Notes: generated by a model not told the origin, from the sequence alone. 64,000 nucleotides of DNA from Takakia lepidozioides (GCA_030704615.1 CM060731.1:41788001-41852000), one strand, 5' to 3'; numbered from the stretch's first letter, positions 1,828 through 31,374 are shown. Translations and numbers: made by a program.

Positions 1828-1981
1828 TGATACGAAAATGGTTGATACGGAAATGGTGAAAAGAGGAGAAGCCACTCTATCACGTTATATAAGTCAAGCC
1901 AATGGCATCTTTGCTAAAAGACTCCACCATACAGACCTCACCCACTCTCCATTTCAAGTACTAGAGTTATGGCGGCGAGAG
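1828..1981. repeat. Repeat B, first part (split by TIR element 1; 15-bp tandem duplication at its start)
   Basis: Matches 31033..~31165 and continues at 7623. Confidence 0.85.
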
Positions 1982-2672
1982 CCTGGGGGGGTGCACTCTT
2001 TATAAAATGTCCGTATCACGTGCGTTCGCCGCCTAATAAAAAAACCCCCTGTATACGGGTCCTTGGATCATTTATACCCCCTCTGTACATACATTTTGAA
2101 GATTATAAAACCCCCTCCTGTAAATATATAGAAATTTGTAATTTTAAAAAAATACCCCCTTCTGTATGTATATTTCCCTTTTCAATAATTAAAAAATACC
2201 CTCAAATATGTATATGTATGTTTTAATATTATATCAAGTTTATTCATTTAAAAATAGAATAAAATCTAATAAATTCATTAAAAAAATTGTTTGCCCTCGA
2301 TAAAACTTGTTGTGGAATCTCACTTTGAACAATAATCAGATGCCGAGAGGAAATGGACATTGTCAATGCCCTATGTGCAAGAGGCCTGAAGAAAATTTCT
2401 ATTTTCTGATATGCAGTCCTGGGTATTTCATCAGAGAGTGACCCTCTTGAAGACCAAGACCTAGTCACTGCACCTCTGTTCATCAACTAGGACAGTTTCT
2501 GAACTTGTTCTACAGTTTCAACCTTCGCAAGGTCCAATTATGTTCAAAACCTACTGTTAAGAATTCCTCTCCAAAAAGAGATTTCGTGCGCCTTTGCTGC
2601 CACTGTTGGAGTCCAACCTGACTCGCAGTTGACAGAGTTCAATACATTCAATTAGATGACAAGCATTTCATT

Positions 2673-5600
2673 TCACCAATACTCCCCACAAGAACAAACA
2701 CCATTTTGGAAGTGGTGACAGCGGTTTGCATCCCGTACAACAATCTCTTGCTTAGCTATCTTTGAGATGAATTTGGTGGCTGTGTGGCAATCACCACACA
2801 TCCGAAGATTCTTGATGGTCCCTAAAGACATCCCAGAGGGTGTGTTGATAAGCCCCAAAACAATGGCCAGCTTCTCATTGTGGTGGCAAAGAGACGATTC
2901 TTTAAGCTCTTCCTCAACATCATGCAATGCAAAGTGCGGGCTTCACCCCTTCGCACATCATTTGCTCATAGGTCTCCAAAGCCTCCATCCCGCGCCTTTG
3001 TTGTGCATATCCTGCAATCATAGCACTCCACAACAGCACATCTCGTTCAGCCATACTGTCGAACACTCCCTTCATACATGTCCACGAGGGTACTGTTCAA
3101 AATGACATTTGATACAATTGCAGATCTAACAATGTCGCCATGGACCTCTTTGCCCTTTTCCAAAGCTGACAGACTTACACACGCATTGCAAATGTACACA
3201 AACGTGATGTGGTCGGGCTTCACCCCTTCCCCCATCATTTGATCATAGGTCTCCAAAGCCTCCATACCATATCCCTGCTGTGCATACCCTGCAAGCATCG
3301 CACTCCACGACACCACATCTCGTTCAGCCATGGAAACTCTCTTCGCATCCTTAATGCACCCACATTTGGCATACATGTCCACCAAGGGAGTGTTCAGAAT
3401 GACATCTGGTACAATTCCAGCTTTGACAATGTCACCATGGACCTCTTTCCCCTTTTCCAGAGCTCCCAGGCTTGCACACGCATTGCATCCTGCTAACATT
3501 ATATTCCACGTGATCAAAGATCGTTGAGGCATTCTGTTGAACACTTGGTGAGCATCAATGATGCTCCCGCACATAACATACATGTTGACAAGGGTGTTGA
3601 GAAGAAAAACATTTGACGTGAATCCACTTTGGATGATGTGAGTATGCACCTGTTTTCCAACTTCCAGACCAGTGTTGGACTGGTATCAAGTTTTTTACAT
3701 ACCAGACTGGTCCTGGTACCAGGCGTATCACAAAACTTTCATACCAGTCTGGTTTCTATAATGGTGGATGTATTTTTTTCCAGATACTAGTATGAATATG
3801 AGTATCATGACCACAATACCAGCTGGTATGAGATATCAACTCTGGTATCATTCCAAAGCCATCTTGAGTTACAAATTTGTCAAGTGGCAAGTATCAAGTG
3901 AAAACAAATAAAATATACATAAGAAGTAAATATACATAAGTACGAATATATAGGCATATGTACACATAAATTAATTCAGTATACATACCAGAGTAAATGA
4001 GGAAGACGATGGGGGAGTACGGGTATTGTGGCTGGTATGAAAGAACTGATACCAGCCTGGTCTGATATCTGACCAAGTATTCTCCCAAATGATACCAGAC
4101 TGGTCTGATATCTAATACCAGTGCATATACCAGTATTATGTACCAGTCCTTCACCTATATACCAGTCCAACACTATTCCAGACCTTCCATCTTAATGCAC
4201 TTAAGCAAAAGACAAACATACATATCTGAATCTGGTGAAATGCCTTGTGATGTGGTTAGGCTTCACCCCTTCCCCCATCATTTGCTCATAGGTCTCCAAA
4301 GCCTCCATCCCGTGCCCCTGTTGTGCATACCCTGCAAGCATCACGTTCCACGACACCACATCTCGTTCAGCCAGAGTGTTGAAAACTCCCCTCACATCCT
4401 TAACGCACCCACATTTGGCAAACATGTCCACAAGGGCAGAGTTCAAGATGACATCTGGTACAATTCCAGCTTGCACCCAGGCTTTCACACACATTGCAAA
4501 CACAAACAAATGTGATGTGGTTGGGCTTCACTGCTTCGCACATCATTTGCTCATATGTCTCCAAAACACTCCTACCACACCTATGCTTGGTAAATCCTTT
4601 CAACATAATATTCCACGTGATCAAAGATCATTGAGGCATTATGTTGAACACTTGGTGAGCATCCCTGATGTTCCGGCACTTAACATACAGGTTGACAAGG
4701 GTGTTGAGTAGAAAAACATTTGGTGTGAATCCACTTTGGATAATGTGAGTGTGCACCTGCTTTCCAGCTTCGAGACCGTCCATCTTGATGCACTTAAGCA
4801 AGAGACAGACACGTATTTGAATCTGCTGAAATGCCTCCTTGGTTTAGAGTCTGTAGAGCCTCTGTCAGGCTGTCGCTTAAAGTATCTTCACATGCCCAGA
4901 AGTGCCAGAAGAGGCATTGTGGACTCCCTCTCTTGATCCTCTTTCAGAAGCTGTGGTCATGGTTGAGGTGCCTGATTTTATCAACTGTGCCGCTGCAGCT
5001 ACTGCCTTTAGTTGACAATCTACCCATGCAGGTTTCTTATAGCTACTGACCCCCACATGGAATCAAGGTAATCTGGAGCTTGAAGTCCAACCCTCTTGGA
5101 TGAATATGGACCCACACTCTATCCATGCTCATTCAGGAAAAAATAGGGAAAAACTCTGATAACAGGGAAAAACGGGCTGAAATGTGTTGAAGAAGGTACC
5201 TTCATTAGCAGCGCCTTGTTCTATCAAATGCACTGCTACCGCTGCTATTTCCAGTTGACCATCTACCCACGCAGCTTTCTTGTAGCTATTGATCCGCAGG
5301 GAATCAGAAGTAATCTTGTGTTTAAAATTGACCTCTTGGATGAATCGTGTTCCACGACACCACCTTGTTCAGCCATAGTGTTGAACACTCCCTCCGCATC
5401 CTCAATGCTCCCACAATGCTCCCACAATGGCATACATGTCCACAAGGGTATTGTTAATAATCAGATCTGGTACAATTCCAGCTTTGGTGATGCAACCATG
5501 CACCTCTTTGCCCTTTTCCAGGGCTGCAGGCTTGCACACGCACTGCAAACGCACACAAACATGATGTGGTCGAGCTTCACCCCTTCCCCCATCATCTGCT

Positions 5601-6070
5601 TTCAGGTCTCCAAAGCCCCATCTCGCGCTCCTGCTCTGCACACCCTGCAAGCATCGCGTTCCACGACACCACATCTCATTCAGCCATAGTGTTGAACACT
5701 CCCTTGGCATCCTCAATGCTCCCACATTTGGCATACATGGCCACCAGAGCAATGTTCAGGATGACAAATTTTGGTACAATTGCAGATTTGATGACATCAC
5801 CAGGGATCTCTTTGCTTTTTTCCAGGGCTGCCATACGCACTGCAAACTTACACAAACGTTATGTCGGCGGCCTTCACCCCTTCCCCATCATTTGCTCAAA
5901 GGTTGGAGCCTCCATCCCGCACCCCTGCTGTGCATACCCTGCAAGCATCGCACTCCACAACACCACATCTCGTTTAGCCATAGAGTTGAACACTGGTCCC
6001 TTATCCTCGATGCACCCACATTTGGCTACATGTCCACCAGGGCAGGGGCAGTGTTCAGAATGACATCTGG
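2673..6070 (-). pseudogene. PLS-class PPR-DYW RNA-editing factor relics (several rearranged copies)
   Basis: P/L/S motifs (VVSWSAMLAGYAQQG, KPDHITFV, ILNTALVDMYAKCG). DYW domain at 2673-2927 with HNEKLA...CGDCH...CSCGEYW. Frameshifts and deletions throughout. Confidence 0.88.
3670..4175. mobile_element. hAT-like MITE
   Basis: TIRs CAGTGTTGGACTGGTAT / ATACCAGTCCAACACTA, perfect 8-bp TSD TTCCAGAC (3662-3669, 4176-4183), and ATACCAG subterminal repeats. The empty-site paralog is at about 4750-4800. Confidence 0.88.
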
Positions 6071-6365
6071 TAATCTGATAGGCATTCACCTTTTTGCCTC
6101 GGTTGTCCCACCATTGTCTGGGGTCAGAAAAATATTCATTCCACAACTTCTCCTCGTCTTTGTTACCTGTTTTTGGATATTTTCCTGTTGTCACATTGGC
6201 AGTATCATGTCAAAGTCATTCCAAACTATCCTAGATTCACTCAACCAGCTAACTTGCATAATTCAACATGAAAATTTAGGGCCGATTCTGATAGGAGGGG
6301 AAAACAGGGTGAAATGTGTTGCAGAAGGTGCCTTCATCAGCAGTGCCTGATTTTATCAATTGTGC
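6060..6365 (-). pseudogene. OSB-type PDF-motif (organellar ssDNA-binding) module joined to PPR repeats; related modules at ~4960-5345 and ~7050-7170
   Basis: EEKLWNEYFSDPRQWWDNRGKKVN resembles the PDF motif of plant OSB proteins (W..FF..P..WWDNR..K.N...PDFKH). Confidence 0.7.
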
Positions 6366-6389
6366 CGCTACTGCAATCTGAAGACAGTA

Positions 6390-6755
6390 TTCATTTTCTG
6401 ATACACTGTCCGGGGTTCTCTCATTGATAACAAGTACGTTGAAGGTTGCAATGACCAAAAGTGCTTCTAATAGAGTCCCACATCAATTCAATCTCAAAGA
6501 AGTTCATCCCTTGACTGGCTGGAGAGTGGTCTTACACATTGGTGATTCAATGGGGCGCTCTAGGAAGACAACCAAGGGCAAGGACTTCAACTATAGGTGA
6601 CCAAGTGCAGTGGACTCGTGAGAAATCCCAAACCCTAAACGTTCCATTGTGGACTATATCATAATGGACAATTTGTTCCCCCAGTGTGCCAATGTGTTGA
6701 TCGACAGAACTGATATTGGTACCTCTGACCACTTCCTGGTTTGGACTGAGATCAA
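6390..6755 (+). pseudogene. LINE APE-type endonuclease fragment
   Basis: Translates with frameshifts to RSIVDYII ... DIGTSDHFLVW (C-terminal SDH motif). Confidence 0.55.
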
Positions 6756-7622
6756 AAGAGAACCTCTTGTGTGTGCATACTTGTCTGTAGCCAGGTAACG
6801 ACGGATTGGTCAGTGAGAACCACCACGGTGCAGCTGAGCACGGCCTGCTTAGAACAAGCTGACTCTCCCAAGAACCTTGTAAACATCTGGAAGAATACCA
6901 AATCAGGTACTAACAGGAGGCAAGATCCCGTAATAGCAGGATGGAAAAAAATCTTCACATCGTACCTTAAGAAAACGCCACACCTTGCAATTGCAATTGT
7001 CCCACCATTGTCAATCTTCTAAAAACTCATGCCAGGTCTGCTCAGTGCTGCAAATTCAGGGCCGACTCTGTTGAGAGGGCAAGACAGGCTGAAATAGATC
7101 GAAGAAGAAGGTGCCCTCACCACATTGTCCTTGACCTTGTGTCATGACCCATGGAGGATTTGCCCTCCCATCAACCCAAAAGGATCGCTTCCCTAAACTC
7201 TCCCCTAAACCTTGTAAACATCAGGAAGAATACCATGCCCTGTGGAGAGGAGGGGAGAGGAGAGGAGGGAAAAGAGAAAGCCCGCAGAAGGGAAGGCGAA
7301 CGCGGGAGAGGAGTGGAAAGGAGATGAGAGGAGGACAGGGAAAAGAGAAAGCGGCGGGAGGGAAGGGGAGAAAGATCGCGGAGAGGAAAAAAAAAAAAAA
7401 AAACAAAAACAAAGAGATGATCCCGCGGTGCATCGCGGCCAAAACGTCACTCTTACCACTACACTACCCCTTAAAATACAACAACCCCCTCCTGTAAAAT
7501 TATATTTAAGGTGTTTTAAACCCCCCTCTGTATGTATAATGTTGTACATGGGGGGGGTTTAAAATACCCCCTCCTGTGCACGCACGTGGCTGGTACATTT
7601 AATGAGGAGTGCACCCCCCAGG

Positions 7623-7839
7623 GGCGAGAGAGGCCTCGTGAGGTTCGACTAGAAGAAGACGAGCCTGCCTATGTCTCACGTGGAGATAACCTCCCCACGT
7701 CCCAAGTGAGGTTCGCCACCTCACTTGGCACATGGAACCAAATGAAGTCCCAATGCCAACAAAATACAAATATAAATGTATAATGTCCTAATTAGCTAGA
7801 AATAACTATTTCTAACTAATCACAAACAAAACCATGACA
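7623..7839. repeat. Repeat B, second part
   Basis: Matches ~31158..31374 and ends ...AAAACCATGACA. Confidence 0.9.
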
Positions 7840-7841
7840 GC

Positions 7842-7926
7842 TGTCGTGCACCTAAGCATCGTGCCACAACATACATTGTTGTCCAACCACACTTCCTAGC
7901 ATATAGTCCTAGAAAGCCACGCCACA
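7842..7926. repeat. Repeat A (inner copy), preceded on the coding strand by a polypurine tract
   Basis: Near-identical to 1739..1823. The minus strand reads AGGGGGGCGAT-TGTGGC. Confidence 0.9.
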
Positions 7927-8183
7927 ATCGCCCCCCTAGCTGGTGATTAGGTCCCTCTAACACCGGATAGCTTGCAAGTATCCACCCCAATAAGATCATC
8001 GCTTGGTCTTCAATCGCACAAGTCCCAACACCTGAAGTTGATAGATCAAGAGGCCGGGTGCAAACGTAGCCCCATCGTTAGTCGCCTTCATGCAATCCAT
8101 GATCTTCAGTTGAGTATCCATGGCATTGAAGCCCCACTAGCTAGACCTTGGATCACTTGTCCGCCTCGCCACTGTCATGCCCA

Positions 8184-9929: not shown

Positions 9930-10401
9930 GCTTCTCTGTAAGCTTGTCTGACTCCATCAACCACTTCAATGGTTGGTGATCCGTGACAAGGGTGAAGAGA
10001 TTGTCATAGAGGTAGCATCTGAAATGTGCCACTGCCCATACCGCAGCTAGACACTCCCCTTCATAGGAACTATACTTCGCCTCGGCATCATTGTTCGAGC
10101 GGCTAACATATGCCACTACGAACTCTCTTCCCTCATCATCCATTTGTGTAAGCACTGCTCCAATCCCCAACATACTCCAATCCGTATGTAGTTGGAAAGG
10201 CCGCCCCCGAATAGGCCGCCTCAGAATAGGTGCAGAAGTCAATCGAGCCTTGAGTTCCTCAAAGGCTTCCTCCTGCTCCCCCTCCCGCTGCCACTCCTGA
10301 CCCACCTTGGTCAACTTGGTAAAAGCCTTTGCAATGTTGCTAAATCCCTTGACAAACCGTCGATAGTAGTTTGCCAATCCCATGAAAGCACGAAATCCAT
10401 G
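9835..10401 (-). pseudogene. RT thumb and RNase H of the DNMT-bearing retroelement
   Basis: RAFMGLANYYRRFVKGFS, FQLHTDWS, YEGECLAAVWAV, LVTDHQPL. Confidence 0.92.
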
Positions 10402-10767
10402 CCCAGGAGGTGCATTCTTCATAAAAAGACCATATCATGTGCGTGCAGCAACCAATAAACAATACCCCTGTATATAGCTTGATTCATGAATTTATCATAT
10501 GTATTCATATTTTTAAGACTTTATTAAAACCCCTAAAGTATTTATATAAAACAAACAATTAATGAATAACAATACCCTGCTGTATGTATTCATGTGTTGA
10601 TTGAGAATATAAAAACCCTTTAATTAGTTGAAGTAAAGTCGGGCTGTGGTCTCTACACACATTCTGCTGCTGCTTCTTCTTCCCCTTGCTGCACTTGGAG
10701 CTGCACATTTGGGTTTTCTTGTGGGGATCTGTTTGGGAGGGAAGGGAGGAGGAATTGAGGAGGAGAA

Positions 10768-13700
10768 ATGGGTGTGGAACGCAAGTCGGGAGTGATCGCT
10801 CTGTTTGACGTCGATGGCACGCTCACTCCTGCTCGAAAGGTGTGTGGAGGTCTCATGTTCTGCCTCAGAAGCAGATCCAAGTTCAAAAGGCAGCAAGCTC
10901 TTTGTTCTGTAAAGCATTTAAGTGTGGCATTTTTGGACGTGGGGTTTTGTCTCTGTTATGTTATGCTGCGTTTGTGTGCGTTGTAGCCTTATAGACGCGA
11001 TTTTTTCCTTCCTTTTACAAGAATCCGTTATATCTTACTCGCTGATTTAAAGGTTACTCATAAGTCTTTGTTATCATGAACTGCGTACCCGCCACCAGGG
11101 TGTCAGATTGATAGAGAACAAGAATTAATTTGTGCGCCAACACTGAATGTGGGATCTGTTGGATCTGTTGGATCTGTTAGGAAGCGTCACCTCAAATGCT
11201 CAAGTTTCTTCAAGTTCTACGCAAGGTATCACCCTCTTTTTCTCTATTTGTCAATTTCAATAGGAGTGTCTTCCTCAGATGATTCCCCACTGTTTAACAT
11301 CAATGCTCTGAGCGTTTGTGAATCCCAGTCTGCCCAGGGAGTATGTATACTGGCTATGGTGCTTTTCAGGAGAGGGAGTGAGGGATCAGGTTATGGGAGG
11401 GGCTGCCACAGCTGAGATGCGTTCAGAGAGCTCTCTGCATGGGCAATGTGGCCTCCATCCTGGGAATTTCCAAGAGAAAGAGTGAGAGGGGTTTTATGCC
11501 TTACAATACGATCTGGGTTGGAGAACAGAAAAGCCAGACTCGAAACACTTTTTGGGGTTAAGACGGAATAAATCCATACTTTGGTTGCATGCATAGGCAC
11601 ATGAAGTTGAACTACTGATAAAGCTTTGTTCTGTTGGAGACGGGTCCAGGTGGTAACAGTAGGTGTTGTGGGGGGATCCGACCTCATAAAAATTTCTGAA
11701 CAGCTTGGCAAAAATGGTCTCTCTCTCTCTCTCTCAATCCACAATTTTTGGCAGAAGTTTTCAGCTTTGATGACCCAAAAGGCCTGGCAGCCTACCTGCA
11801 TGATGCGCTTTGTCTTCGGGTATCCTTTGATGTATTCTGAAGTGGTTTCTTGTTGTTCTACTTTTTCTGGTGGGCCTTGGAGCCCCCTGTTGATGTGATC
11901 AAGTTTATCTCTTTCTTTATCTCTCTGTTACTTTTGAGACTAGCTGGAGTCAAGCTTATCTTGCAAATGGTGCATTGTTCACCGTGAGTGAGCTGTGGGA
12001 GTTCCATAGGACACTGAGCCAACTGAGACAGATTAGATCTAGTAGTGTGATGGCAAGTCATTACAGTAATGTTTAGAACACAGTTGCTGTCTCAAACCTT
12101 TATGTGTCAGAGCAGCTTTGGAACCAAATGTGGAGGTCGTTGCTCAAATATTGTGCTGACATGGATGCGTGGATGTGTGGCAGCTGTGTCAGAGTATGAT
12201 TATGTCTTCTCAGAGAATGGGCTTGTGGCTCACAAGAATGGGAAACTTATTGGCAATCAGGTCTGTTTGTGTCCCTCCTTTGGCCTTCACTTCATGTTCC
12301 CTTGAACTATTGCAGACCTATGGTACTGTCTGCAGGACAGATGATGAATGCATCTCTTGCTCACCTCTTGAAGACTACATTTGGGTGCTTTCATTTTAGA
12401 TATTGCGGTTTGTGATAGCTTGTGGAGCTGATTATCAAAAAAATTGTCTGCCTTCCTTTGATTCTGCAAGCTAGCTACCAAAGTCCTGATGCTGGAGGGG
12501 AAGATGGACTGTGTTGGGTGCAGAGCCTGAAGGCACATTTGGGTGAGGCAAAGCTCCAGGTAACTATTGCATCCGCCTTTGTTTGGTATTCTTCTAAGCT
12601 GTCATATCCTGCCTGCTTATATGAATGGTCATTGCCATAAACGCTCTGAACTTTGAACTGTCTACACAAGATAACATAAGCTGGAACTGGGGCTTGAAGT
12701 TGTACCAAACACACTTCGACTTGTGTGAGTCCTTGGAGGAAAGTTGTGTGCATCCACAGGTCTGGTTTGCTTGATAATCACAAGGGGTTCAATGCTGCAT
12801 ACCCAACAGAATTCTGTTCATGTAAGCTTTGAATATCATAAGTAACTGGATCATCTTTGCATAATAGACAGACAGTTTGTGATGGGCCCCTTCCAAGACA
12901 AAGCCGCAATACTGTTGTGAACCCCAGGGAAGTGGCAAATGTCCTATGCTGGTGTCTTGTTTCTTGATCTATAGGTTGACTGGTGTTTGGCTTCAATGGC
13001 ATTGTCCGATTATGCTTGGATGTGCACTGTGCCTGGCATGTATTTGAGTTTGAAGTAGACCTCAACCAGTTTTACATCAGGTTAATAACATGGGAAATGA
13101 TGGGGTCTTTTTTGTATGCCTTTTTGATGTGCAGGAGTTTATTAACTTTACACTTCACTACATTGCTGACCTGGATATTCCTATCAAGAGGTCAGTTTCC
13201 CAAAGTGGCAGATGTTGGAAGTAGTTGTCTGTTCTTGGCATATGCTTTCAAATCTCAAGGTTGTCTGTTCATAAGACTCCTAAGGCTTGGCAAGAAGTTA
13301 CAAATGTTGTGCATTAAATTCAATGTTCACCAACTCTAAAAAAAAAAAAAAAAAAAAAAAAAGGCTTCAAATCTAAAAAATGGACCATGAGAATGTGGCA
13401 CTCAAAAAATCAACCCTCCAAAAAAAAAAAAAAAACAAAAAACCTTTGTAGTAGTTGTAGTGCAGCCAAATGTAGATTTGAGATCATTGGCATCACGCAC
13501 CATTGATAGTATTTATATATGTGACCAAAGGGTCTGACCAGCAGTCAGGGAATGGATGTGATGGTCTTATCGTGTGGTGCTTGACAGAGGCACATTCATA
13601 GAGTTCCGAATGGGCATGCTCAATGTGTCCCCAATAGGCCGCAACTGCAGTCAAGAGGAGCGCGAAGAGTTTGAGCGCTACGACAAGGTAAACCAGCCAA

Positions 13701-15686
13701 AAGAAGAGAGAGGGAACCAAGACAACCTTCATGATGTCCACAGTGGCTCCAACAGGCCCATGTGAGAAAGTAGAACAACAAGAACACAAGTAAAGGGCCC
13801 ATGGGAAATAGTAGGACACGAAGAAACCACTTTAGGAAACATAAAGCGCCATCCAAATGCAGGTAGGCTGGCAGGCACTTGTTGCAAGACAGGAGAAAAA
13901 AAGTGATTAATTACTTCCCTGGTAGAGAGAGAGAGAAAAAAAAAATCTGCTGCCTGTGAAATCCATTGGTGATGTCTTCTTTGGGGCATGGTACTGTTGC
14001 GGACAACCTTGAAGAGAATGCAACTGAGTGTCATATGTTGTACATGCGGAACCAGCTGTGACAAGTGTAGCTTCGTTAAGGGTAACTCGTCGGCAAATGG
14101 TCTCTATTTTCCAAACACTAGAAGTAGGGCCTGAGCCATAGTTTGCAAGTGTCTAATGCCCTAGATAACTGTAAGCATGGCTCCCCCCTGAACCCAATCA
14201 GGATCCTTGAAAAGGTTACTTTGGTGCTAGTGAGACGATGTACTTCCCGCCGAGTCCTGGTATTACGTTAGTGCTATTTGCTAGAGAAAATTGGCGTCAG
14301 TACCTGTCTCTTCCTGTCTCTTCCAACCCCAAATTAGGTGATAGAATCATGCTAAACTGGTAATGCAGGTGCACTGTGTGAGGAAAACAATGGTGGGCGT
14401 ACTCAAGGACAAATTCAAGGACTTCAGTCTGACCTTCTCTATCGGTGGCCAGATAAGCTTTGATGTGAGTTGAGCTGTGCTTGTGTAAGATGTTAGATTT
14501 CTCTACTATCTCCTAGATTCCAGTAGCAGTGTATTTGGTAGATTGTGCAACAGTCTCTTGGTGCGTATGTTTGAGCAGGGGCATAACTTGCAGTTTTGTG
14601 GGGTACATCAGGTTTTCCCAAAAGGATGGGATAAAACCTTCTGCCTCCAGTTTGTTGAGAAAGAGTTCTCTGAGATTCACTTCTTCGGTGACAAAACCTA
14701 TGAGGTAGATTACCACTTCTCTGTATATCAAAGGTGAGGATGAGCGAGAGATGTACAGCATAAAATTGGGAGGGGAGGAGGAAGTGCAATAAGGGTGGTG
14801 GCAAACTAGACTTCAAAGGAAAAAATTTGGGTTCTGATACCTTGTGATTGCCTTGAATTGCTGGGTGGGTTCTTCTTGCTATTTTAGATGCTTACTGTCT
14901 TCTGCTATCCTCAATTGGGCCTGTTGGCACTTGTATATTTCTGGTTGATATTATTGTACTACTGTTTCTTTTCTTTTCCTGTGAGGTTTAGAGGCTGATT
15001 GCAGCGGCTATAAGTATCAGATAAGGGCACTGTGGCCACACTTAGGGTGGTCCTGGGCTTAAATATGTTTAGATCTATGTTGGTGGTTGCTTTATGTATG
15101 TATGAGGTCTTAGGAACTGGGCATTAACCCCAAATGTTTGTGAAAATGGAGATTGTCCCAACCCTTTGGCCATAAGGCCCTCCTTGTAGTGCTTATTGAA
15201 AACTAAGTTCTCCTGATGATTTGTTTGAGTCAACAGGGGGGAAATGATTATGAGATCTATGCGTCAGAGAAGACTATAGGCCATACTGGTAAGCATTCTG
15301 TACTTCCTTTTACAACAGAAGAACAGTTATGTAAGGCAATAGTGTTTTTGCGACAGCATTCTTTTCATAACCTGGCAAATTGCGAGTCCTCTGATTTCCA
15401 AACCTCCATCATCTCATTTGGTGCTGTAAGCCGTTTGTTATTTTTTCGGGTGCTGGGGTACTACACATTACCCAAGAATCTTATAAACCTGTCCCCGTTC
15501 TTTTCTAGTTTTTGCTTGGTCCTGGTTAAGCAACATACTACTACATTAATGGAGCCATGGCTAGAGTTGAGTCAGGGCATCCTGTTTTCATACTCTCTCT
15601 CGTTTCTGACGAGAGTAGAACCGGTTTGTGCAGTGACAAGCCCTGAAGACACCATCCAGCAATGCACAGACATTTTCTTATCTTAA
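10768..15686 (+). CDS. PMM: Phosphomannomutase (HAD-IIB), apparently intact, 11 exons, 248 aa
   Basis: Exons 10768-10839, 11181-11225, 11650-11716, 12184-12260, 12524-12559, 13135-13190, 13588-13687, 14369-14464, 14612-14704, 15237-15288, 15634-15686. All introns are GT-AG and phases are consistent (747 nt). Motifs [67 protein letters not shown]. Confidence 0.95.
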
Positions 15687-16139
15687 ATCATTTGCGCTAC
15701 AGAGAATCATGGAGCCTCAGCCTTCCCTTCTCTATGGAGGGTAACTGCTTGCAAGCAGTTTTTGGCATGTAGGAGTGCAGGCTTGTATCCTAACCTTCTT
15801 GTGTCCAGAAGGGTAGATAAAAACTTACTTAGAGATGGTCCTGTATTGTTACAGACTAGAATATAGCAAGAATCCATTCAATGGGCTGTATTCTTTGGGC
15901 TGCTCTCAGTTTTGTTTGGTAGGTGCCCTTATTAGAAAAGTGTTTCTTGAGGCATTACTGCTTTGGTAATTGCATTCAGTTACCACAATAAGGTTGAATT
16001 GAGGCATACGTTGTTGTGGTATAGGAGGCAGGTCGTATGCCAGTTTTTGATTGCATCACAAATGTAATCAGTACAATTTTACAGTGAATTCAATCATTTC
16101 TTTTTTAAAGAAAGGGGATGGAAGCGCTGAGTTTTTATA

Positions 16140-17262
16140 TCAGCCGGACAAAGGCCCAAGGAATACAAAGAGGAAAAAATAACCTCTATATTGGATGCCA
16201 TAGGGGCTGATCCAGGAAGGCAATGCTTCGTAATCAAAGACCTTAAGAAAAGCAGAGGAGGAAGCAGAATTCAGGGACAAAGCAGCAGTGAGAAGAGGAT
16301 CATCTTCAACAGAATACAGAGATCTAGTAACTACCACGCTTCCTCTTGTAAGGTTCATAAGAAAGCTGGGTTCTAGACCTAGTCTTCCTTAGAGCGACGG
16401 TGCCACCAATTGACCTCAGATTCTTCCCCATCTGCTGGTGAGTGCTTCACGCTAATGGAGCTCCCAGCTTGGTGGGATGGTGTCAACCCATTGAACTCAA
16501 TTCAATCATGATGTGAGAGTGAGGTCAAGTGGGGAAGTTTGATTTATCACATTCCTCTTTTTTTTTTCTTTCTAAAGGGAAACACCTAGGAGCAACAGCT
16601 CACAAATCAGGCCCCTTAATTATAGTGAGAGGAAAAAATAACCTCTTTCACAGGAGGAACCTGGCCGTTTTCACATCATTCTTTATACAAGTTGGATGCC
16701 TACTAGAGGATGTTAACAACCTAAATAGACAAGAAATGTTCACCAGAGAAGTCTGCAATGAGTACTGATGAAATTGGTTTTGATTTTGTAAGCAAATGAA
16801 TGACTGTTAGTGTCCCTCTTGGCATAGCCAGTATCTAACCGATTTGAGTAAAATCTTCTGGGAGACTCTTGATTTCCAGGGAGAAGCTTGGCATGGAGCA
16901 GTCTCCCTTAGGACTCCCACCAGCTCTGATGGATCAAACACTATGTATGATGCAAGCCCCTTCATTTCTGACATTGTGTCATCCATGTCCTCCTCTTCTG
17001 GAGTCTCTCTCACGCTACTTTGGATGGCGGGAGCTGAGCTGGCGGATGAACAATGCAAGGAAGTCGTGCGTTTGGATTGGAAAACTTCCCACAAACAGAG
17101 TTTGAAGCCTGCGGCCAAACGACAGCTTTCGGGGCAGTCTTCTGCGTCGCAAAACCAAGGAAGAGCGAAGAGAGAGAGAGAGGGGGGCGGAGAGAGGGGC
17201 GGGGGGGGGGGGGGGGTCTGGCAATTCTTGAGTGTTGTTACAACGAACTTAGCCACATTCAT
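16140..17262 (-). pseudogene. Possible captured, degenerate gene of unknown identity
   Basis: Protein-like minus-strand segments (16807-17262, 16140-16420) with a transit-peptide-like N-terminus. Family not recognised. Confidence 0.25.
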
Positions 17263-18091
17263 GGAGAAGAGAGAGAGGGATCGAGAGAGAGCGCGGAGAA
17301 GAGTGTGACGGATACTCCAGCGATTTCCTCACCAGACACCAGTTCCATATCCGGTGATAAATCCTGTATCTCAACACATGGCTCTTTTTGAACTTCGTGG
17401 CAAAGCTGCTGGAATGCTTAGAAACTCACAACGGTATATCCTAATAACTGAAAACAATAAACCTATGTCTAGTCTCCCAGCATATATGTTCACGGACCAG
17501 TTCTTCCTGATCTTGACTTTGTTGACATGTGTAGTTCACATATAATGCAGTTTAGAACGATGATCTCAGGCAAATAAATCCACCGAGAACGTCAAAATTC
17601 CCCGGAAAAATAACATCAGACTGGAGTATCTCACAAAGTTTGCTTCACGCGCGATGAAAAGATGTCATACTGGAGATAAAAATTAATATAAGACAATTCT
17701 GCGAGACTGATGGGGCCTTGAGCATTCAAGACAGTTCAGTATTCTACAAAACAGCAGGAAATGTGAAGTACTGTGTACATAACCCCAAACATTCAGCTCC
17801 ATGATCATTCTTTGGAAGTATAAATATGTAGCTTCCACATCTTTGTGGGAGCAGCAGTGGTATTTCTAGAGCAACGGTCCTCCCAAGGTAATAAATGGAA
17901 AAAGCTGTTGTGTTTAATGCTGTGCATAAGTACTTGGCGAATTTTTTTCCCTTACACGCAATGTGTGGAGTCTGATCTTTTGTAGCAAGATAGTATGTTC
18001 TGGTCTGGAATGGCATCAGGCTTCGAAACCGTTTATAAACCTGATGTGAACCTGGTGTGGTATAAAACCTGGTGTTTTTTTTAGTTTTCTA

Positions 18092-18340
18092 TGAAAGGAT
18101 TTCCCCATTCAGCTCTATGAATTAATTTTGATGAGCAATTCTTATGCAACTTCTCATGGTGACAAGGCCGATGGGCGAGATGAATCACTCCCTCCTCCTG
18201 GGAGAGACAGGCCAACCAACAGGCATAACGGGAGGGAGTTTTTTTTATCTTGATGCCCATGGGCCTTGTCACCATGAGAAGTTGCATAAGAATTGCTCAT
18301 CAAAATTTCACAAAGCTGAATGGGCTAATCCTTAAACTTT
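18092..18340. repeat. Long inverted repeat (fold-back), candidate hairpin RNA
   Basis: ATTTTGATGAGCAATTCTTATGCAACTTCTCATGGTGACAAGGCC (~18126-18169) pairs with its reverse complement at ~18261-18307. Pairing extends imperfectly outward; loop ~80-90 nt. Confidence 0.8.
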
Positions 18341-19199
18341 CATGGAACACTAGAATCGCTGGGGCAGAGCAACATAATCCAACAATGAGCTGGTACCTCC
18401 TGCTTAGTGTCACTATATCCACAAAGGGAATTTTTGAGCAAAGCTTTATGGTTCTTTTCAAGGGCCACTTTTTTCCTTGTTTGTTACTTTTCTTCTGTCC
18501 CATAAACTCTTTGAGCTTTCCTTGGGCCATATATAGTTTCTCTTTCTTTGCCACCTCAAATAGGTTCAATGCTCCACCAACAACTCATGAATTTCAATTG
18601 ACAGATCCAAATATTTGAGAAATGTTGAGGAAGGTATCTTCTCAAGAAGCTCGTTGTGTTTCAACCGAGTCTGTTTGTTTGTAATGAGTCTGTCTGATCA
18701 GATTAGTACACTGGCACGAGGTTTCCTGTGTTTCAACACATAATAGGGAGGTTCTTAGAGGTGTTGCGTCAAACAGCGTGACCGTGGAGAGAAATGAATT
18801 GAGATGGTACCGTAGAGAGAAAGACAGAAAACAACTTTTGCCCAAAATAGAACAAAGCACAAAAAAGTTGTGAATTCCAAATTTAGTCAAACTTGTTGAG
18901 ACGACATACGCACTGGAAGCGATTATCATTTGTGCTGATCGGAAATCTACGTTGGGGGCTTCCTTGTTAAAGTTGTTGGCGTAGGGAATAGCTGGAGATT
19001 GCGCCGCTGCATCACAGATTTGGAGAAGGAGTTTGCAGTTGGCAGCGAAAGCATAGTTTTGTTTGGAGCTGGGCAGTGAGAGTGCTCATGGTTTTGCTTG
19101 GAGCTGGCAGTGAGAGAGCATACTTCTGTTTGCAGCTGTCAATGAGAGCATGGTTTGTTTATACGATTTCATAGTATGGAGATATGTTGTTAGAGCTAT

Positions 19200-19848
19200 C
19201 ATGGAGTGCATGGATGCAAGCAAAGGGGTGTATCTGGTGGGCACCCGGATTTGGGAAGTGGGGAATAGGTATCGCATTCTATCTCGACTTGGCTCTGGAT
19301 CATACAGAGATGTTTGTAGAGCTTTGGATCTTGAACTCCACTAAGTGGTGGCTATCAAGAGGGTGGAGGATGTGTTTAGCTGCGGGCCAAACGGGAGTTG
19401 AGGGACGTTTGTATCCTCCAACATTTGGCCCATCCCAACGTTATCTCTTTCAAGGAGGTGTTCAGTGTCCACACAACGGGGCGCACCGACCTCTACATAG
19501 TTACTGAAGTCGCAAAATGGGGAGACCTTGCCGATCGTTTGGCTAATCAAGTCGAGCCTATGCCAGCGTTGTGCAATCTATCATCAAAGAGGTACTGCAA
19601 GCTGTTCTGTTCAGTACCTGCACTCTTGCAATGTGTGGCACATGGATATCAAGGCGGAGAACCTACTTTTTAAGGAAGGGCGAGTCCTACTGTGTGATTT
19701 TGGCCTATCCCGGGCTGCAGCTGCAGAGGGTGAGGCTACTTTCGAGCCTCCCAAAGTGATCATGCCCCAGGGGAAGTATACTTCAGCAATTGACATATGG
19801 TCAGTGGGATGCATCTTTGGGGAGTTCCTCCTCATGTATATATTTTAA
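19200..19848 (+). pseudogene. MAP kinase-like (CMGC) pseudogene with internal deletions
   Basis: LGSGSY, VAIKR, HPNVI, HMDIKAENLL, CDFGLSR, YTSAIDIWSVGCIFGE; contains stops and frameshifts. Confidence 0.8.
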
Positions 19849-20169
19849 TACAAAATTATGGACAAACTATAGATCGGATCTAAGAAAAATCAAAATAACT
19901 TGTGTAACCGATAAAAATTAGTATAAAATTTATTTTCCGTTTATAGAACTGTTAAAAACATGCTGAAATGTGTTGAGAAAGGTGCTTTCATTAGCAATGC
20001 CTTGTTTTATCAATTGTGCTACTGCCGCTATTGTTTCCACTTAGGCCAAAACAAGAAGTTTTTTTTTTTTTTAAAGGTGGGGGCCTCTCTCCCTCCCCCG
20101 TTTTCCTTGGCCTAAGTAGGGGGGAGAGAGACAGCAGTAGCAGCTGCTGCTCTCTCCCTGCTTAGGCAA

Positions 20170-22430
20170 ACAAAATGATAAAAAAAACAATAATAGTAAT
20201 AACAGATCTCGTTGCTCCCACATTTGACATACATGTTGACGTGGGTACTGTTCAGAATGACACCTGATATAACCCTAGCTTTGACAACATCACCATGGAC
20301 CTCTTTGCCTTTTTCAAGGGCTGCTTGCATGGTTGCTCATGCATTATAAACACAAATGAACATGATCTGGTCCAACTTCAAGCCTTCCTGCATCATTTGC
20401 TCAAAGGTCTCTATGTCAAAGTCTTCATGTCGCACCCCTCCTATGCATATCCTGCATTCATCACGTTCCACAACACCATATCTCGTTCAGCCATATTGTC
20501 AAAACACTGCATCTGGTTAAACCACCTTGCTGCACCCGCTCTTAAATTACATGTCCACCAAAGTAGGGTTCAGAATGACAGCTGATACAATTCCAGTTCT
20601 TACGATGTCACCATGGACTTCTTTGCCCTTTTCGAAAGGGTATCAGGAGAGAAAGAACTCCCGCTCTCTCTCTCTCTCTCCCCTTTAAGCTCCCGACGCG
20701 ATGAATTCGAGGTCAAATGGTGGGGTCAGCTGCAATGTATGACTAATACCCGGTATCCTAAGTTAATCGACTCTATATCTTGGAAGCAGGACTGCCCAGT
20801 AGATTTCAAATAGTTTGGATTCTAATTTAATGTCCCGGTAGCTATATAAACTATTCTAAGTGTCAAATTGTTGTACAAGGAAAAACAAGCTCATGTGAAA
20901 TGTGATGGGACATACAGCTTGTTGTTAGGTGTTGGTAAAATGCAGGGAGAACATTCTGCTGCTCAAATGGATCCCACCTGCCAGCTGCAACATAGATATT
21001 TGATAGCAACACATAAGTCGCGGCATCCTGTTCATTCGACGTGAGGATAGATATTGCCGCACATTCAGCCATCTCCACATTGCCATGGATTCTGCAAGCA
21101 CCAAGCAAGGCCTTCCACCCCATAACATCTGGATTGATGGCATTTTATTAATCAGGTCCACTGCCTCATCCAGTTGTCCCGCACATCCAAGAAGGTCTAC
21201 CATGCAGCCAAAGTGCTTTACTGTCAGAGTGACACCATGATCTTGACTAAGGGAATCGAAGTAGTGTCTTCCTTCATCCAGTAGGCCAATGTGGCTGCAT
21301 GCAGAGAGAACACATATAAAGGTGATACTGCCCGACTTCAAACCGTTCTTTTGCATTCCTTCAAATAGTTGCAGGACCTCCCTATGACAACCATGCTGGG
21401 CATATCATGCAATCATCGCGTTCCACGACACCACATTTCGTTTAGCCTGCATATTGTCAAATACTCCCTTTGCATCCTCAATGCACCCACATTTTGCATA
21501 CATGTCCACCAGGGCAGTGTCCAGAATGACATTTGGTACAATTCCAGCTTTGATGATGTCACCGTGCACCTCTTTGCCCTTTTCCAAGGCTGCCAGACTT
21601 GCACAATCATTGCAAACGCACACAAACGTGATGTGGTTGTGCTTCACCCCTTCCCCCATCATTTGCTCATAGGTCTCCAAGGCCTCCATCAGTGCCCCTG
21701 CTATGCATATCCTGCAAGCATGTCGTTCCATAACACCAAATCTTGTTCCACCTTGAACACTCACTCCACATCCCCAATGCCCCAATGCTCCCACATTTGG
21801 CATACATGTCCACAAGGGGAGTGTCCAAATCACATCTGGTACAATTTCAGATTGACATGCAACCATAGACCTCTTTGCCCTTTTCCAGGGCTGCCAGACT
21901 TGCACACAAACGTTATGTGGTCAGGCTTTACCCCTTCTCCCATCATTTTCTCGTAGGTCTCCAAAGCCTTCATCCCATGCCCCTGCCGTGCACATCCTGC
22001 AAGCATCGCGCGTTCCATAACACCATATCTCGTCCAGCCATAGTGTTGAACATTCCCTCCGCACCCTCAATGCTCCCACATTTGGCATACATGTCCACGA
22101 GGGTATTGTTCAGAATCAATTCTGATACAATTCCAGCTTTTGCGATGCAACTATGCACCTCGTTGCCCTTTTCTAGGGCTGTCAGGCTTGCACACGGACT
22201 GCAAACGCACACAAACATGATGTGGTCGGGCTTCACCCCTTCCCCCATCATTTGCTCATAGGTCTCCAAAGCCTCCATCCCGCGCCCCTGCTGTGCATAC
22301 CCTGCAAGCATCGCACTCCACGACACCACAACTCATTTAGCCATAGTGTTGAACACTTCCTTTGAATTCTCAAAGCACCCACATTTGACATACATGTCCA
22401 CCAGGGCAGTGTTCAAAACGACATCTGGTA
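20170..22430 (-). pseudogene. PLS-class PPR relics including an E domain
   Basis: PPR motifs as in element 1. HFGCMVDLLG..GQLDEA, WKALLGACRIHGNV and ATYVLLSNIY (20863-21356). Frameshifted. Confidence 0.88.
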
Positions 22431-24460
22431 ATCTGACAGGCATTCACCTCTTTCCCTCGGTTGTCCCACCATTGACTGGGGTCAGAAAAATACTCACTCC
22501 ACAACTTCTCCTCATCTCTGCTACCTGTTTCTGGATACTTTCCTGTTGTCACATTGGCAGTATCATGTCAAAGCCACTCCAAACTAACTCAACCAGCTAA
22601 CTTGCAGAATTCAACATGAAAATTTGGGGCCGATCTGATAAAAAGGAAAAACAGGCTGAACGGTGTTGAAGAAGGTGCCTTGATTAGTAGTGCCTTATTT
22701 TATAAATTGTGCCGCTGCTGCTGCTGCGGCTTCCAGTTGACCATCTACCCATGCAGGTATCTTATATCCTTCCACAGGAATCATATGTAATCTGGAGCTT
22801 GAAATCCGGTCTTCTTGGATGAATCTGGACCCACACTCTATCCCTGTTCTTTCAGGTATCCATGCCCCTGCACGAATCATGCCTACATCCTTGCCTTGCT
22901 GCTAGCAGCTGATAATGATAGCCTATAATTCTTCCAGCAAACCCCCCAACCATACTTCTCACGCTAGTTTCTATGCTGACTTGCGTCTGCTTCCAACAAA
23001 CATTCACCTTAAATTGCCTCGATTGTTCCACCATTGGCTGGGGTCGGAAACGTGTTCATTCCAGAGCTTCTCCTCGGCTCCATTATCTGTTTTTTGATAC
23101 TTTCCTGTTGCCACATTGCCAGTAACATGTCAAAATCACTCCAAAACCACCATAGAGACGAGCTAACTTGCAAAATTCAGCACGAAAATTTTGGGACGAC
23201 TTTGATAACAGGGAAAAACAGGCTGAAATGTGTTGAAGAAGGTGCCTTCATTATACTCAATTGTGCTGTTGCCGCTGCTGTTTCCAGCTGACCATCTACC
23301 CACACAGATTTCTTGTAGCTATTGATCCACAGGGAATCAGAAGTAATCTTGTGATTGAAATCCAACCCCCTAGGATGAATGTGGACCTCTATCCCTGGTC
23401 CTTCAGCCAGCTAACTTGCAAATTTCAGCATGGAAATTTAGGGCCGATTCTGATAAGAGGGAAAAACAGGGTGAAATGTGTTGAAGAAGGTGCCTTCATT
23501 AGCAATGCCTGATTTTATCCATTGTGCCGCTGCTACTGTGGCTTCCAGTTGACCATATGTCTTCCACAGGGAATCATAGGTAATGTGGAGCTTGAAATCC
23601 GGCCCTCTTGGATAAATTTGGGCCCACATTCTATCTCTGCTAGCAGCTGAAGCAGCTGACACTGATGGCATGAAGTTCTTCCAGAAAACACCCTAACCCT
23701 ACCTATAGTAACATGTCAAAAACACTCCAAAACCACCATAGATCCACCCAACGAGCTAACTTACAGAAATCAATATGCATCTCAAGGCCGAGTCTGATGA
23801 GAAGGTAAAACAGGCAGAAATAGGTTGAAGAAGAAGGTGCCTCACCACATTGTCCTTGACCTTGTGTCATGACCCATGGAGGATTTGACCAAACATCAAC
23901 CCAAAAATGACCTCTTGCGTGTGCTGCTTGTGTCTGCAGCATTCAGAATGACATCTGGTAATCTGACAGGCATTCACCTTTTTGTCTCGTTTGTCCCACC
24001 ATTGGCTGGGGTCAGAAAAGTATTCATCCCACAACTTCTCCTCATCTCTGTTACCTGTTTTTGGATACTTTCCTGTTGTCACATTGGCAGTATCATATCA
24101 AAGTCACTCCAAACTACCAAAGGTTCACTCAACCAGCTAACTTGCACAATTCAACATGGAAATTTAGGGCCAATTTTGATAAGAGGGGAAAATAGGGTGA
24201 AATGTGTTGAAGAAGGTGTCTTCTCCTCACCTATGTTATCTGTTTTTGGATACTTTCCTGCTGCCACATCGGCAGTAATTTGTCAAAGTCACTCCTAACC
24301 ACCACAGATCCACCCAACGAGCTAAAGTAAAAAATTCAATATGCATCTCAGGGCCGAGTCTGATGAGAGGGCAAAACATGCTGAAATAGGTCAAAAGAAG
24401 AAGCTGCCCTCACCACATTGTCCTTGACCTTGTGTCATGACCCATGGAGGATTTGACCGA
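22430..24460 (-). pseudogene. Array of degenerate OSB-type PDF-motif modules upstream of the PPR repeats
   Basis: WWDNR/WWDKR at ~22460-22475 and ~23985-24000, RGPDFKLHITYDSLW, DFNHKITSDSLW...WVDGQL. Homologous to 4960-7170. Confidence 0.7.
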
Positions 24461-24878
24461 CCATCATCTCTTGTGTGTGCTGCTTGTACTGTACCCTCCC
24501 AAGAACCTGGTAAACATAAGGAAGAATACGCACAAGAGCCAAGCGCGCGTAGCAGAAGTGAGAGCGGCAGCGAGTACCAACATGAGCCAAGAGCACGCAG
24601 CAGAAGTGGGAGAAGGTCCGCGCAGCGGATGATAGGAGGCGGAAAAAAAACCAACGCAAAAGGATTTGAGCACGCGATGTCGCGGTGGATAAGTGGAGAC
24701 CTTACCAGTATGCTACATACAAACATACGTAACTTACCCCCAAATATATATATATATATATATATTAGGAATTCTTCAGCCCCTTTCTATATACATAGTA
24801 TGTATGTGGGGGTATTAAATTACCCCCATTCTGTTCATGCACGTGATAGGTACATTAAACCTTGGTGCACCCCCCAGG

Positions 24879-31032: not shown

Positions 31033-31374
31033 TGATACAGAAATGGTGAAAAGAGGAGAAACCACTCTATCACGTATATAAGCCAATGGCACCTGTGCTA
31101 AAGGACTCCACCATACAGACCTCACCCACTCTCCATCTCAAGTACTAGAAATATGGGGACGAGAGAGGTCTCGGGAGGCTCGACTAGTAGAAGACGAGCC
31201 TGCCTACGTCTCATGTGGAGATAACCTCCCCACGTTCCAAGTGAGGTTTACCACCTCACTTGGCACATGGAACCAAATGAAGTCCCAATGCCAACAAAAT
31301 ACAAATATAAATGTATAATGTCTTAATTAGCTAGAAATAACTATTTCTAACTAATCACAAACAAAACCATGACA
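31033..31374. repeat. Repeat B (5' terminal copy, 342 bp, TG...CA)
   Basis: Matches the joined 1843..1981 + 7631..7839. No repeat A adjacent and no TGG-type PBS follows it. Confidence 0.9.

Follow-up and report, generated by a model that had tools for sequence, protein, structure and literature searches.

Two diverged members of a probably hAT-like transposon family in Takakia lepidozioides carry decayed PPR and PDF-like gene fragments

PPR sequences as cargo of mobile elements

PPR-DYW proteins determine which RNA sites are edited in organelles, and early land plants possess thousands of them. The accepted driver of the PPR expansion in these plants is retroposition, a model which PMC3814199 attributes to O'Toole et al. 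2008. In a kingdom-wide study, 2,016 PPRs and 750 DYW-type genes were counted in Takakia lepidozioides, the most DYW-type genes of all (PMC13386178). The study reported that dispersed duplication is dominant, noted 'limited retroposition features', with weak signatures of retroposition in Takakia, and made no mention of DNA transposons. That fragments of PPR genes may be transposon cargo is already known from grapevine, where the CACTA element Cactavine-5 carries such a fragment (PMC2528002).

Two elements within a 64-kb stretch of Takakia DNA (hereafter the window) were compared with these systems. Like the Pack-MULEs and other transduplicating DNA transposons (MULEs of rice and Arabidopsis, Cactavine-5), they are non-autonomous TIR elements filled with a patchwork of gene fragments with intron borders, amplified by transposition and mostly non-coding. 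By contrast, their target duplications comprise 8 bp and their TIRs are short, so that by the features tested they are neither MULE nor CACTA elements. Moreover, unlike in the known examples, one amplified PLS triplet and PDF-like exons prevail in their cargo, which diverged members seem to have in common through descent. With non-autonomous hAT elements of the Ds / dTph1 type they have in common the 8-bp duplication, short TIRs, clustered subterminal repeats, the lack of a transposase and closely linked insertions, but they differ from them in their tip, which is CCTGG and not YARNG, and in their large gene-fragment cargo. The dispersed, TE-associated PPR copies of the retroposition model (O'Toole et al. 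2008, as cited in PMC3814199; PMC13386178) are similar in this respect. The copies in the Takakia elements, however, moved as DNA, contain intron and splice-site remnants, are enclosed by TIRs and target duplications without a poly(A) tail, and are fragments instead of whole intronless genes. On the basis of the two copies examined, the elements are likely diverged members of a hAT-like non-autonomous family with an ancestral chimeric PPR/PDF-like cassette, which is now dead cargo.

Ends, insertion sites and superfamily of the elements

The coordinates of both elements and their parts are listed in Table 1. Element 1 is bounded by perfect TIRs of 14-15 nt, CCTGGGGGGGTGCAC on the left and GTGCACCCCCCAGG on the right, whose core GGGGGTGCAC occurs three times in the window while 0.14 occurrences were expected. 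Repeats resembling ACCCCCTYYTGTA are clustered within approximately 250 nt of both ends, and five of the six matches to this motif in the window (at most one mismatch) lie within the ends of element 1. The sister LTR is unbroken across the insertion point and contains the target 8-mer GACGAGAG once, positions 1843-1981 aligning with 31033-31165 and positions 7625-7839 with 31160-31374. Chance inverted repeats as the source of the element 1 ends were ruled out by this empty site. No transposase-type Pfam domain was detected in any element 1 ORF tested and no transposase in the whole window; Tandem Repeats Finder and Rfam searches gave no result.

For element 2, the right end that a previous sequence-only reading had placed was confirmed at 24865-24878. 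The left end, which that reading had left unplaced, was found at 10402, making the element larger than thought. It consists of a decayed copy of the terminus (CCCAGGAGGTGCAT), after which approximately 45 nt show homology to the element 1 left end. When element 2 was excised in silico, the continuity of the ORF in the retrotransposon pol region did not discriminate between duplication lengths. Both elements reside in one retrotransposon, only 2.8 kb apart. The RNase H and integrase ORFs of this host are located on the minus strand (8427-10422) and its LTRs are 94.2% identical after removal of element 1. Presumably, the host, a Ty3/gypsy retrotransposon, integrated first and the two elements each inserted into it separately afterwards.

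The homology between the corresponding ends of elements 1 and 2, left and right, extends over approximately 45-190 nt. Between the left and right arms, identity is about 78% over 50 nt, and no alignment is possible beyond that. When the four termini were used as a profile, only these four ends were detected in the 64 kb (E = 1e-22 to 1e-31), a result which, as the profile was built from the same ends, shows only the absence of further ends. Judged by their termini, elements 1 and 2 are members of one TIR transposon family.

This family of cut-and-paste DNA transposons is probably hAT-like, non-autonomous and of the Pack type; no autonomous partner was seen in the window. The 8-bp duplication, perfect in element 1 and matching at seven of eight positions in element 2, is the one feature from which the assignment to hAT is drawn. 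Among the common plant superfamilies, none other than hAT is known to make duplications of this length. Short TIRs, within the range of about 5-27 nt of hAT elements, and subterminal repeats are present as well. On the other hand, target duplications of 8 bp are made by P elements too and occasionally by MULEs. It is therefore conceivable, if somewhat doubtful, that the family belongs to another superfamily, be it Mutator-like (Pack-MULE), P-like or other. The tip CCTGGGG deviates from the YARNG usual for hAT elements, and host gene fragments (PPR, DYW, E-motif and PDF-like exons with intron borders) replace the transposase, a kind of carriage that is classic for Pack-MULEs (PMC2528002, PMC3814199). 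However, neither the 9-11-bp duplications nor the long TIRs (approximately 100 nt or more) of Pack-MULEs were found; both members have the 8-bp duplication, and their TIRs, perfect over 14-15 nt only, are short compared to the 100 nt and more typical of MULEs.

Table 1. Features of elements 1 and 2 and of the insertion site of element 1 (window coordinates)
Feature	Position	Strand	Evidence or remark
Element 1, non-autonomous TIR transposon	1982..7622 (5,641 bp)	- (cargo genes)	TIRs, target duplication, empty site
Target site duplication (8 bp) GGCGAGAG, left copy	1974..1981	none	direct sequence reading; single at empty site
Target site duplication (8 bp) GGCGAGAG, right copy	7623..7630	none	direct sequence reading; perfect match to left copy
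Left TIR (1982-1996) and subterminal region	1982..2230	+	about five ACCCCCTYYTGTA-like motifs
Right TIR (7609-7622) and subterminal repeats	7440..7622	-	
DYW deaminase domain, C-terminal 84 aa up to stop codon	2673..2927	-	Pfam DYW_deaminase 6e-36; alignment to 7o4e
PLS-type PPR units	2937..3669	-	includes the element's longest ORF (200 aa, 3047-3649)
Nested 506-bp hAT-like MITE	3670..4175	none	TIR CAGTGTTGGACTGGTAT, perfect 8-bp duplication TTCCAGAC
More broken PPR units, incl. duplicated 'leader' PPR segment	4176..4836	-	
PDF-like exon C copies and repeated intron pieces	4961..5345	-	tblastn with element 2 exon C ORF; blastn
Tandem S-P-L PPR units of ~305 bp, two and a bit	5346..6074	-	stops and frameshifts
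15-nt intron remnant GTGAATGCCTATCAG, PDF-like exon to mid-PPR motif	6075..6089	-	alignment of E1, E2a and E2c
PDF-like exon B (..EEKLWNEYFSDPRQWWDNRGKK)	6090..6184	-	bordered by AG and GT; no Pfam match
Snippet resembling LINE endonuclease end (..TSDHFLVW..)	6622..6795	+	translation; no Pfam match
Exon A block (..NPPWVMTQGQGQC, then GTGAGG at 7110-7120)	7056..7181	-	common to element 2
Element 2, 14.5-kb member of the family	10402..24878	-	ends; target duplication AATCCATG / CATCCATG
PPR/PDF-like mosaic of element 2	19926..24470	-	
Empty target site of element 1	31158..31165, in sister LTR 31033-31374	none	alignment

Composition and decay of the cargo

No PPR-like DNA occurs in the window outside the two elements. 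Pfam searches (DYW_deaminase, PPR families, E_motif) corroborated the earlier observation that both of them hold PLS-PPR sequences on the minus strand, in the form of gene fragments; several of their minus-strand ORFs match PPR families. Element 1 had been described as ending in a DYW domain and element 2 in an E domain. Both domains were indeed detected, but neither is complete. The DYW piece corresponds to residues 55-138 of the 138-residue solved domain (7o4e), while the PG box and the first half, with the first 54 or so residues, are missing. It has retained HxE (as HNE) and CxxCH (as CGDCH), terminates with EYW and is directly fused to a P-type PPR motif at position ~2937. The E_motif match of element 2 (Pfam 2e-8, 20863-21123) covers profile positions 1-40 of 63. 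The mosaic of element 2 comprises an L2-S2-E1-E2 piece (20866-21356), slightly more than three PLS units (21391-22431) and another scrap of PPR sequence (20228-20638). Exon B is present in it four times, exon A twice and exon C several times. Element 2 also carries a PMM gene and a kinase fragment.

The exons labelled PDF-like may resemble (W..YF.DP.QWWDNR; DF.HK....LW....WV..QL) the ~50-aa PDF motif of OSB-type organellar ssDNA-binding proteins. They did not match any Pfam model, even at E = 10, Atlas look-ups were blank, and the exon B ORF did not yield candidates in a protein search. Exons A and B are both in phase 1, as read directly from the sequence. The snippet at 6622-6795, which by its motif may stem from the end of a LINE endonuclease, is absent from element 2.

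Frame switches and stops occur throughout both elements, the longest ORF comprising 200 aa, and tblastn matches to the cargo change frames and contain up to six stops. The PPR proteins retrieved in a protein search with this ORF, from Diphasiastrum, Sphagnum, ferns and metagenomes, were no more than 27-53% identical to it. A reading frame that runs continuously through the PLS array, E1/E2 and DYW is absent, and so is a DYW domain that is complete from the PG box to the DYW end and includes HxE and CxxC. The PLS units of ~305 bp all go back to a single triplet and are 74-90% alike. Their differences at codon positions 1, 2 and 3 amount to 0.182, 0.163 and 0.166, with 40, 37 and 40 variable columns (p = 0.93); the lower values at positions 1 and 2 that purifying selection on the repeats would leave are not seen. 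The similarity of the units and the neutrality of their differences ruled out that a natural multi-triplet PPR gene was captured whole. Both cargoes thus read as broken, neutrally decaying patchworks, by which PPR sequence was spread and not working editing factors.

Origin of the cassette and PPR family expansion

Homology just inside both right ends, noticed already in the sequence-only reading, was substantiated. Positions 7056-7173 and 24348-24466 are 90.8% identical, the exon A block at 7056-7181 is 88.9% identical to 23782-23906, and a block reading GTAAACAT...GAAGAATAC at 7208-7232 matches 24505-24530. In both elements, the right end is composed of TIR, subterminal repeats, a purine-rich spacer, the GTAAACAT block and exon A, in this order, and the distance from exon A to the right tip is 441 nt in element 1 and 412 nt in element 2. 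The chimeric junction of a PDF-like exon, 15 nt of intron and the middle of a PPR motif was encountered in three copies (6060-6090, ~22415-22450 and ~23940-23975). The best pair of PLS units spans both elements (89.6% identity, 90/92 support). Due to the identical order at the right ends and the threefold occurrence of the same odd junction, it is probable that the PPR/PDF-like cassette was inherited within the family. It probably moved at least two times, to judge by the separate target duplications of the two elements and by the empty site of element 1.

The view that the cassette is part of the family and not a chance capture agrees with order, orientation and recurring junction. The divergence of the two elements fits less well. 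Their cargo blocks are approximately 90.5% alike and their termini only about 75% (Fisher p = 4e-11), which would not be expected under simple co-descent followed by neutral decay. The gap may result from later cargo exchange or conversion, or from separate captures from an abundant source. The latter would mean that abundant PPR/PDF-like sequence was picked up separately, or was exchanged afterwards through gap repair with ectopic templates, and that the cassette is not ancestral. This is consistent with the divergence values and with the purine-rich spacers between end and cargo, which hardly align across the elements. We nevertheless consider it unlikely, since exon A has the same order, orientation and nearly the same distance to the right tip in both elements and since the identical illegitimate junction points to one founding event, even though a pre-formed mosaic could have been the captured source.

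The family, having no transposase of its own, would depend on mobilisation in trans. If the cassette is ancestral, the common ancestor of elements 1 and 2 would have gained a chimeric genomic piece beside its right end before the two diverged. In this piece, an illegitimate breakpoint would connect exons and introns of a gene with PDF-like motifs with PLS-type PPR repeats. The capture may be regarded as transduplication of the Pack type, presumably with a switch of template in the course of gap repair. Subsequently, a single S-P-L triplet would have been amplified in tandem inside the elements, and scraps would have been added over time, namely the DYW tail, the E-motif piece, the LINE snippet and the MITE, and in element 2 the PMM gene and the kinase fragment. 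Later on, the whole cargo would have decayed neutrally.

It had further been proposed that transposition of these elements spreads and reshuffles RNA-editing factors. In its strong form, the family would be an engine of PPR expansion that duplicated and reshuffled PPR-DYW genes as DNA, some of them working, and this would help to explain the very large PPR family of the plant. Cargo-bearing members did transpose, and the intron borders kept in the cargo indicate that the copying started from DNA instead of mRNA. The dispersed duplication and the scarcity of retroposition features reported for Takakia would also fit. However, neither copy holds an intact gene, both being non-coding patchworks with truncated DYW and E pieces and neutrally evolving PLS units, which makes such an engine very improbable and leaves the proposal unsupported by the two copies. 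Scarcely more probable is a broader scenario, in which several DNA-transposon families of Takakia would pass around a pre-formed PDF-PPR(-DYW) mosaic whose copies stay similar through templated gap repair or gene conversion. Of the ~2,000 annotated PPR 'genes', a sizeable share, with some working editing factors among them, would then have arisen by DNA-level transduplication instead of retroposition, which would also explain the 'limited retroposition features'. The wider claim that these transposons expanded the PPR family is a hypothesis, as the window shows only dead cargo. Elements of this type nevertheless provide a specific alternative, open to testing, for the origin of dispersed PPR sequence with its introns kept, and part of the PPR gene counts may consist of transposon-borne pseudogene fragments. 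Their practical effect would be inflated numbers of PPR sequences and gene models and dispersed homology, not new editing factors.

The MITE nested in element 1 has CAG/TAG tips. Its insertion is apparent from an uninterrupted paralogous site within the same element, at 4602-4836, which matches 3495-3670 plus 4176-4245 with 86-90% identity.

Ends and insertion sites of the two elements

Element 1, the TIR transposon at 1982-7622, has the left terminus CCTGGGGGGGTGCAC and the right terminus GTGCACCCCCCAGG, as read from the sequence, and its ends are bordered by a perfect direct duplication of 8 bp, GGCGAGAG (1974-1981 and 7623-7630). The window contains three copies of the terminal 10-nt core, where 0.14 would be expected. 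The strongest proof of the insertion lies in its flanks (1843-1981 and 7623-7839): they are the two halves of a single LTR, whose sister copy at 31033-31374 runs uninterrupted across the insertion point and contains the target 8-mer once (GACGAGAG, 31158-31165). Thus, element 1 was genuinely inserted by transposition and duplicated 8 bp of its target site.

Element 2 belongs to the same family and spans 10402-24878. Its right end (24865-24878) was located where the sequence-only reading had placed it, and the left end, absent from that reading, was added at 10402. The left end starts with CCCAGGAGGTGCAT, followed by about 45 nt that track the corresponding end of element 1, several CpG sites having undergone C-to-T changes. 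The 8-mers AATCCATG and CATCCATG flank the element. A profile of the four termini, searched over the 64 kb, matched the same four ends from which it had been built and nothing more. When the window was searched with element 1 by BLASTN, PPR-like DNA was confined to the two elements. Within the window, every TIR pair is loaded with PPR sequence and every PPR sequence lies within a TIR pair.

Because of the 8-bp duplication, the short TIRs and the subterminal repeats, the family may be hAT-like, for which the chances appear roughly balanced, since the tip CCTGG differs from the usual hAT tip and no autonomous partner was seen. A MULE, characterized by a 9-11-bp duplication and long TIRs, was ruled out on the tested features. 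None of the tested ORFs of element 1 revealed a transposase-type domain.

Both elements are housed by a single Ty3/gypsy-type retrotransposon (minus strand), element 1 having inserted into an LTR and element 2 into pol, close to RNase H. With element 1 taken out, the two LTRs are 94.2% identical. The empty sister LTR shows that the retrotransposon had integrated before either element inserted. Between the two elements, the divergence is about 10-25%; the family had thus already split into two lineages, both of which were active once the retrotransposon was in place. The two elements are only 2.8 kb apart, a spacing that is unlikely to have arisen by chance for an assumed few hundred copies in approximately 325 Mb (inferred size), and which points to local hopping, a preferred target or numerous copies. 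A direct repeat of 88 nt (1738-1825 and 7841-7928; 98.9% identical) brackets the LTR copy holding element 1 and may reflect a tandem or recombinant arrangement of retroelements.

Composition of the cargo

Captured gene fragments, nested insertions and retrotransposon domains of the two elements and their host
Feature	Position	Strand	Description
Exon A, element 1	7121-7181	-	Exon-like block, GTGAGG donor site at end
LINE-like snippet, element 1	6622-6795	+	Open 58-aa stretch, ends ..GTSDHFLVWTEIKREPL
Exon B, element 1	6090-6184	-	95 nt, AG/GT borders, codes ..EEKLWNEYFSDPRQWWDNRGKK
Nested MITE, within PPR unit of element 1	3670-4175		506 bp, TIRs CAGTGTTGGACTGGTAT / ATACCAGTCCAACACTA
Exon A copies, element 2	19926-24470		2
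Exon B copies, element 2	19926-24470		4
Exon C copies, element 2	19926-24470		Several
PLS units, element 2	19926-24470		Three and a bit
L2-S2-E1-E2 piece, element 2	19926-24470		E motif cut at profile position 40/63
Protein-kinase fragment, element 2	19200-19848	+	Pfam Pkinase 6.5e-19, MAPK-like DIWSVGCIF motif
Integrase, host retrotransposon	8427-9929	-	
RNase H, host retrotransposon	9835-10422	-	

Going inward from its right end, element 1 presents on the minus strand the TIR with subterminal repeats, a spacer that is pyrimidine-rich on this (cargo) strand and, as the first exon-like block, exon A. The exons were named after the PDF motif, which we presume them to resemble; they gave no Pfam match. 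Exon A is followed by about 650 nt including the LINE-like snippet on the opposite strand, which is missing from element 2. We take its open stretch to resemble the C-terminus of a LINE apurinic-type endonuclease, for which no Pfam match was obtained. A repeated intron sequence leads to exon B, and judged from their sequences, the two exons would be mutually in phase. After exon B and 15 nt of intron, the sequence abruptly enters the middle of a PPR S motif. Past this junction, S-P-L units of about 305 bp and further PDF-like exon/intron pieces were found. A leader segment is duplicated, one copy being split by the nested MITE, which has many CTGGTAT-type repeats and a perfect 8-bp duplication of its own (TTCCAGAC). 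Since the paralogous site at 4602-4836 is uninterrupted, this insertion postdates the internal duplication.

The cargo of element 1 closes with the last 84 residues of a DYW domain, joined directly to a P motif. Pfam confirmed the PPR and DYW_deaminase assignments for the ORFs of element 1. In an alignment with the solved domain of 138 residues, the DYW piece covers residues 55-138 and therefore is devoid of the PG-box half. At the join (2927-2940), both the P motif (EGVKP..) and the DYW domain (..GYVPD..) read G-x-x-P, which hints at possible microhomology at the deletion breakpoint.

Element 2 harbors the cargo modules of element 1 in rearranged form at 19926-24470. The remainder contains a PMM gene, the kinase fragment and other material. 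The kinase fragment, which ends abruptly at approximately 19830 with AT-rich DNA beyond, is another captured scrap. At 18095-18333, element 2 also contains a compact inverted repeat that resembles a small MITE or hairpin; its 53-nt arms are 98% complementary and enclose a loop of 78 nt, and 27-nt arms form another pair outside them.

Probable inheritance of the cassette and its decay

The right ends of both elements have the same order of TIR, subterminal repeats, spacer, GTAAACAT...GAAGAATAC block and exon A. Exon A has the same orientation in both and ends 441 nt (element 1) and 412 nt (element 2) from the tip. Moreover, the illegitimate junction from exon B via GTGAATGCCTRTCAG into the middle of the PPR is identical in element 1 and at two places in element 2, which points to a probable single founding event. 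Together, these matches indicate that the PPR/PDF cassette belongs to the family. In a tree of the PLS units, the only supported clade comprised one unit of each element (89.6% identity). As the target duplications of the two elements differ, a cargo-bearing element transposed at least twice. The cargo blocks are far more similar between the elements than the termini (9.5% versus 24.6% mismatches; Fisher p = 4e-11). Ectopic conversion would account for this, as would gap repair with other copies of the cargo as templates; on the other hand, a faster decay of the AT-rich, indel-prone ends would have the same result.

The sequence-only reading had regarded the cargo as editing-factor genes and the family as a possible engine of PPR expansion, but intact editing-factor genes are not present in the elements. 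Besides the loss of half of the DYW domain, protein-level mapping revealed frame shifts between adjacent pieces, with as many as six stops in a single piece, and the longest ORF in the cargo of both elements comprises 200 aa. At the DNA level, the PLS units are mutually 74-90% identical, and their tree is star-like; all derive from a single triplet by copying, unlike those of a natural editing factor, in which the triplets are diverse. Differences per site amounted to 0.182, 0.163 and 0.166 at codon positions 1, 2 and 3, with 40, 37 and 40 variable columns (p = 0.93). This even distribution shows that, once amplified, the array decayed free of coding constraint. The closest PPR proteins in the public collection, identified with the 200-aa ORF, are 45-53% identical and originate from Diphasiastrum, Sphagnum and ferns.

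PPR families and neighboring genes

DNA transposons are well known to capture fragments of host genes. In grapevine, a CACTA family with a PPR fragment has been described (PMC2528002), and retroposition was held responsible for PPR expansion (PMC3814199). A 2026 survey reported 2,016 PPRs and 750 DYW-type genes for T. lepidozioides, dispersed duplication being dominant, yet with "limited retroposition features"; neither DNA transposons nor pseudogenes are mentioned there (PMC13386178). Our literature search retrieved no paper tying Takakia PPR genes to DNA transposons. Outside the elements, long ORFs encode a protein kinase (46790-48643, plus strand; Pkinase 1.6e-39), a protein with a GIL1/IRKI C-terminal domain (49948-51828, minus strand) and an LRR protein (58965-60116, minus strand).
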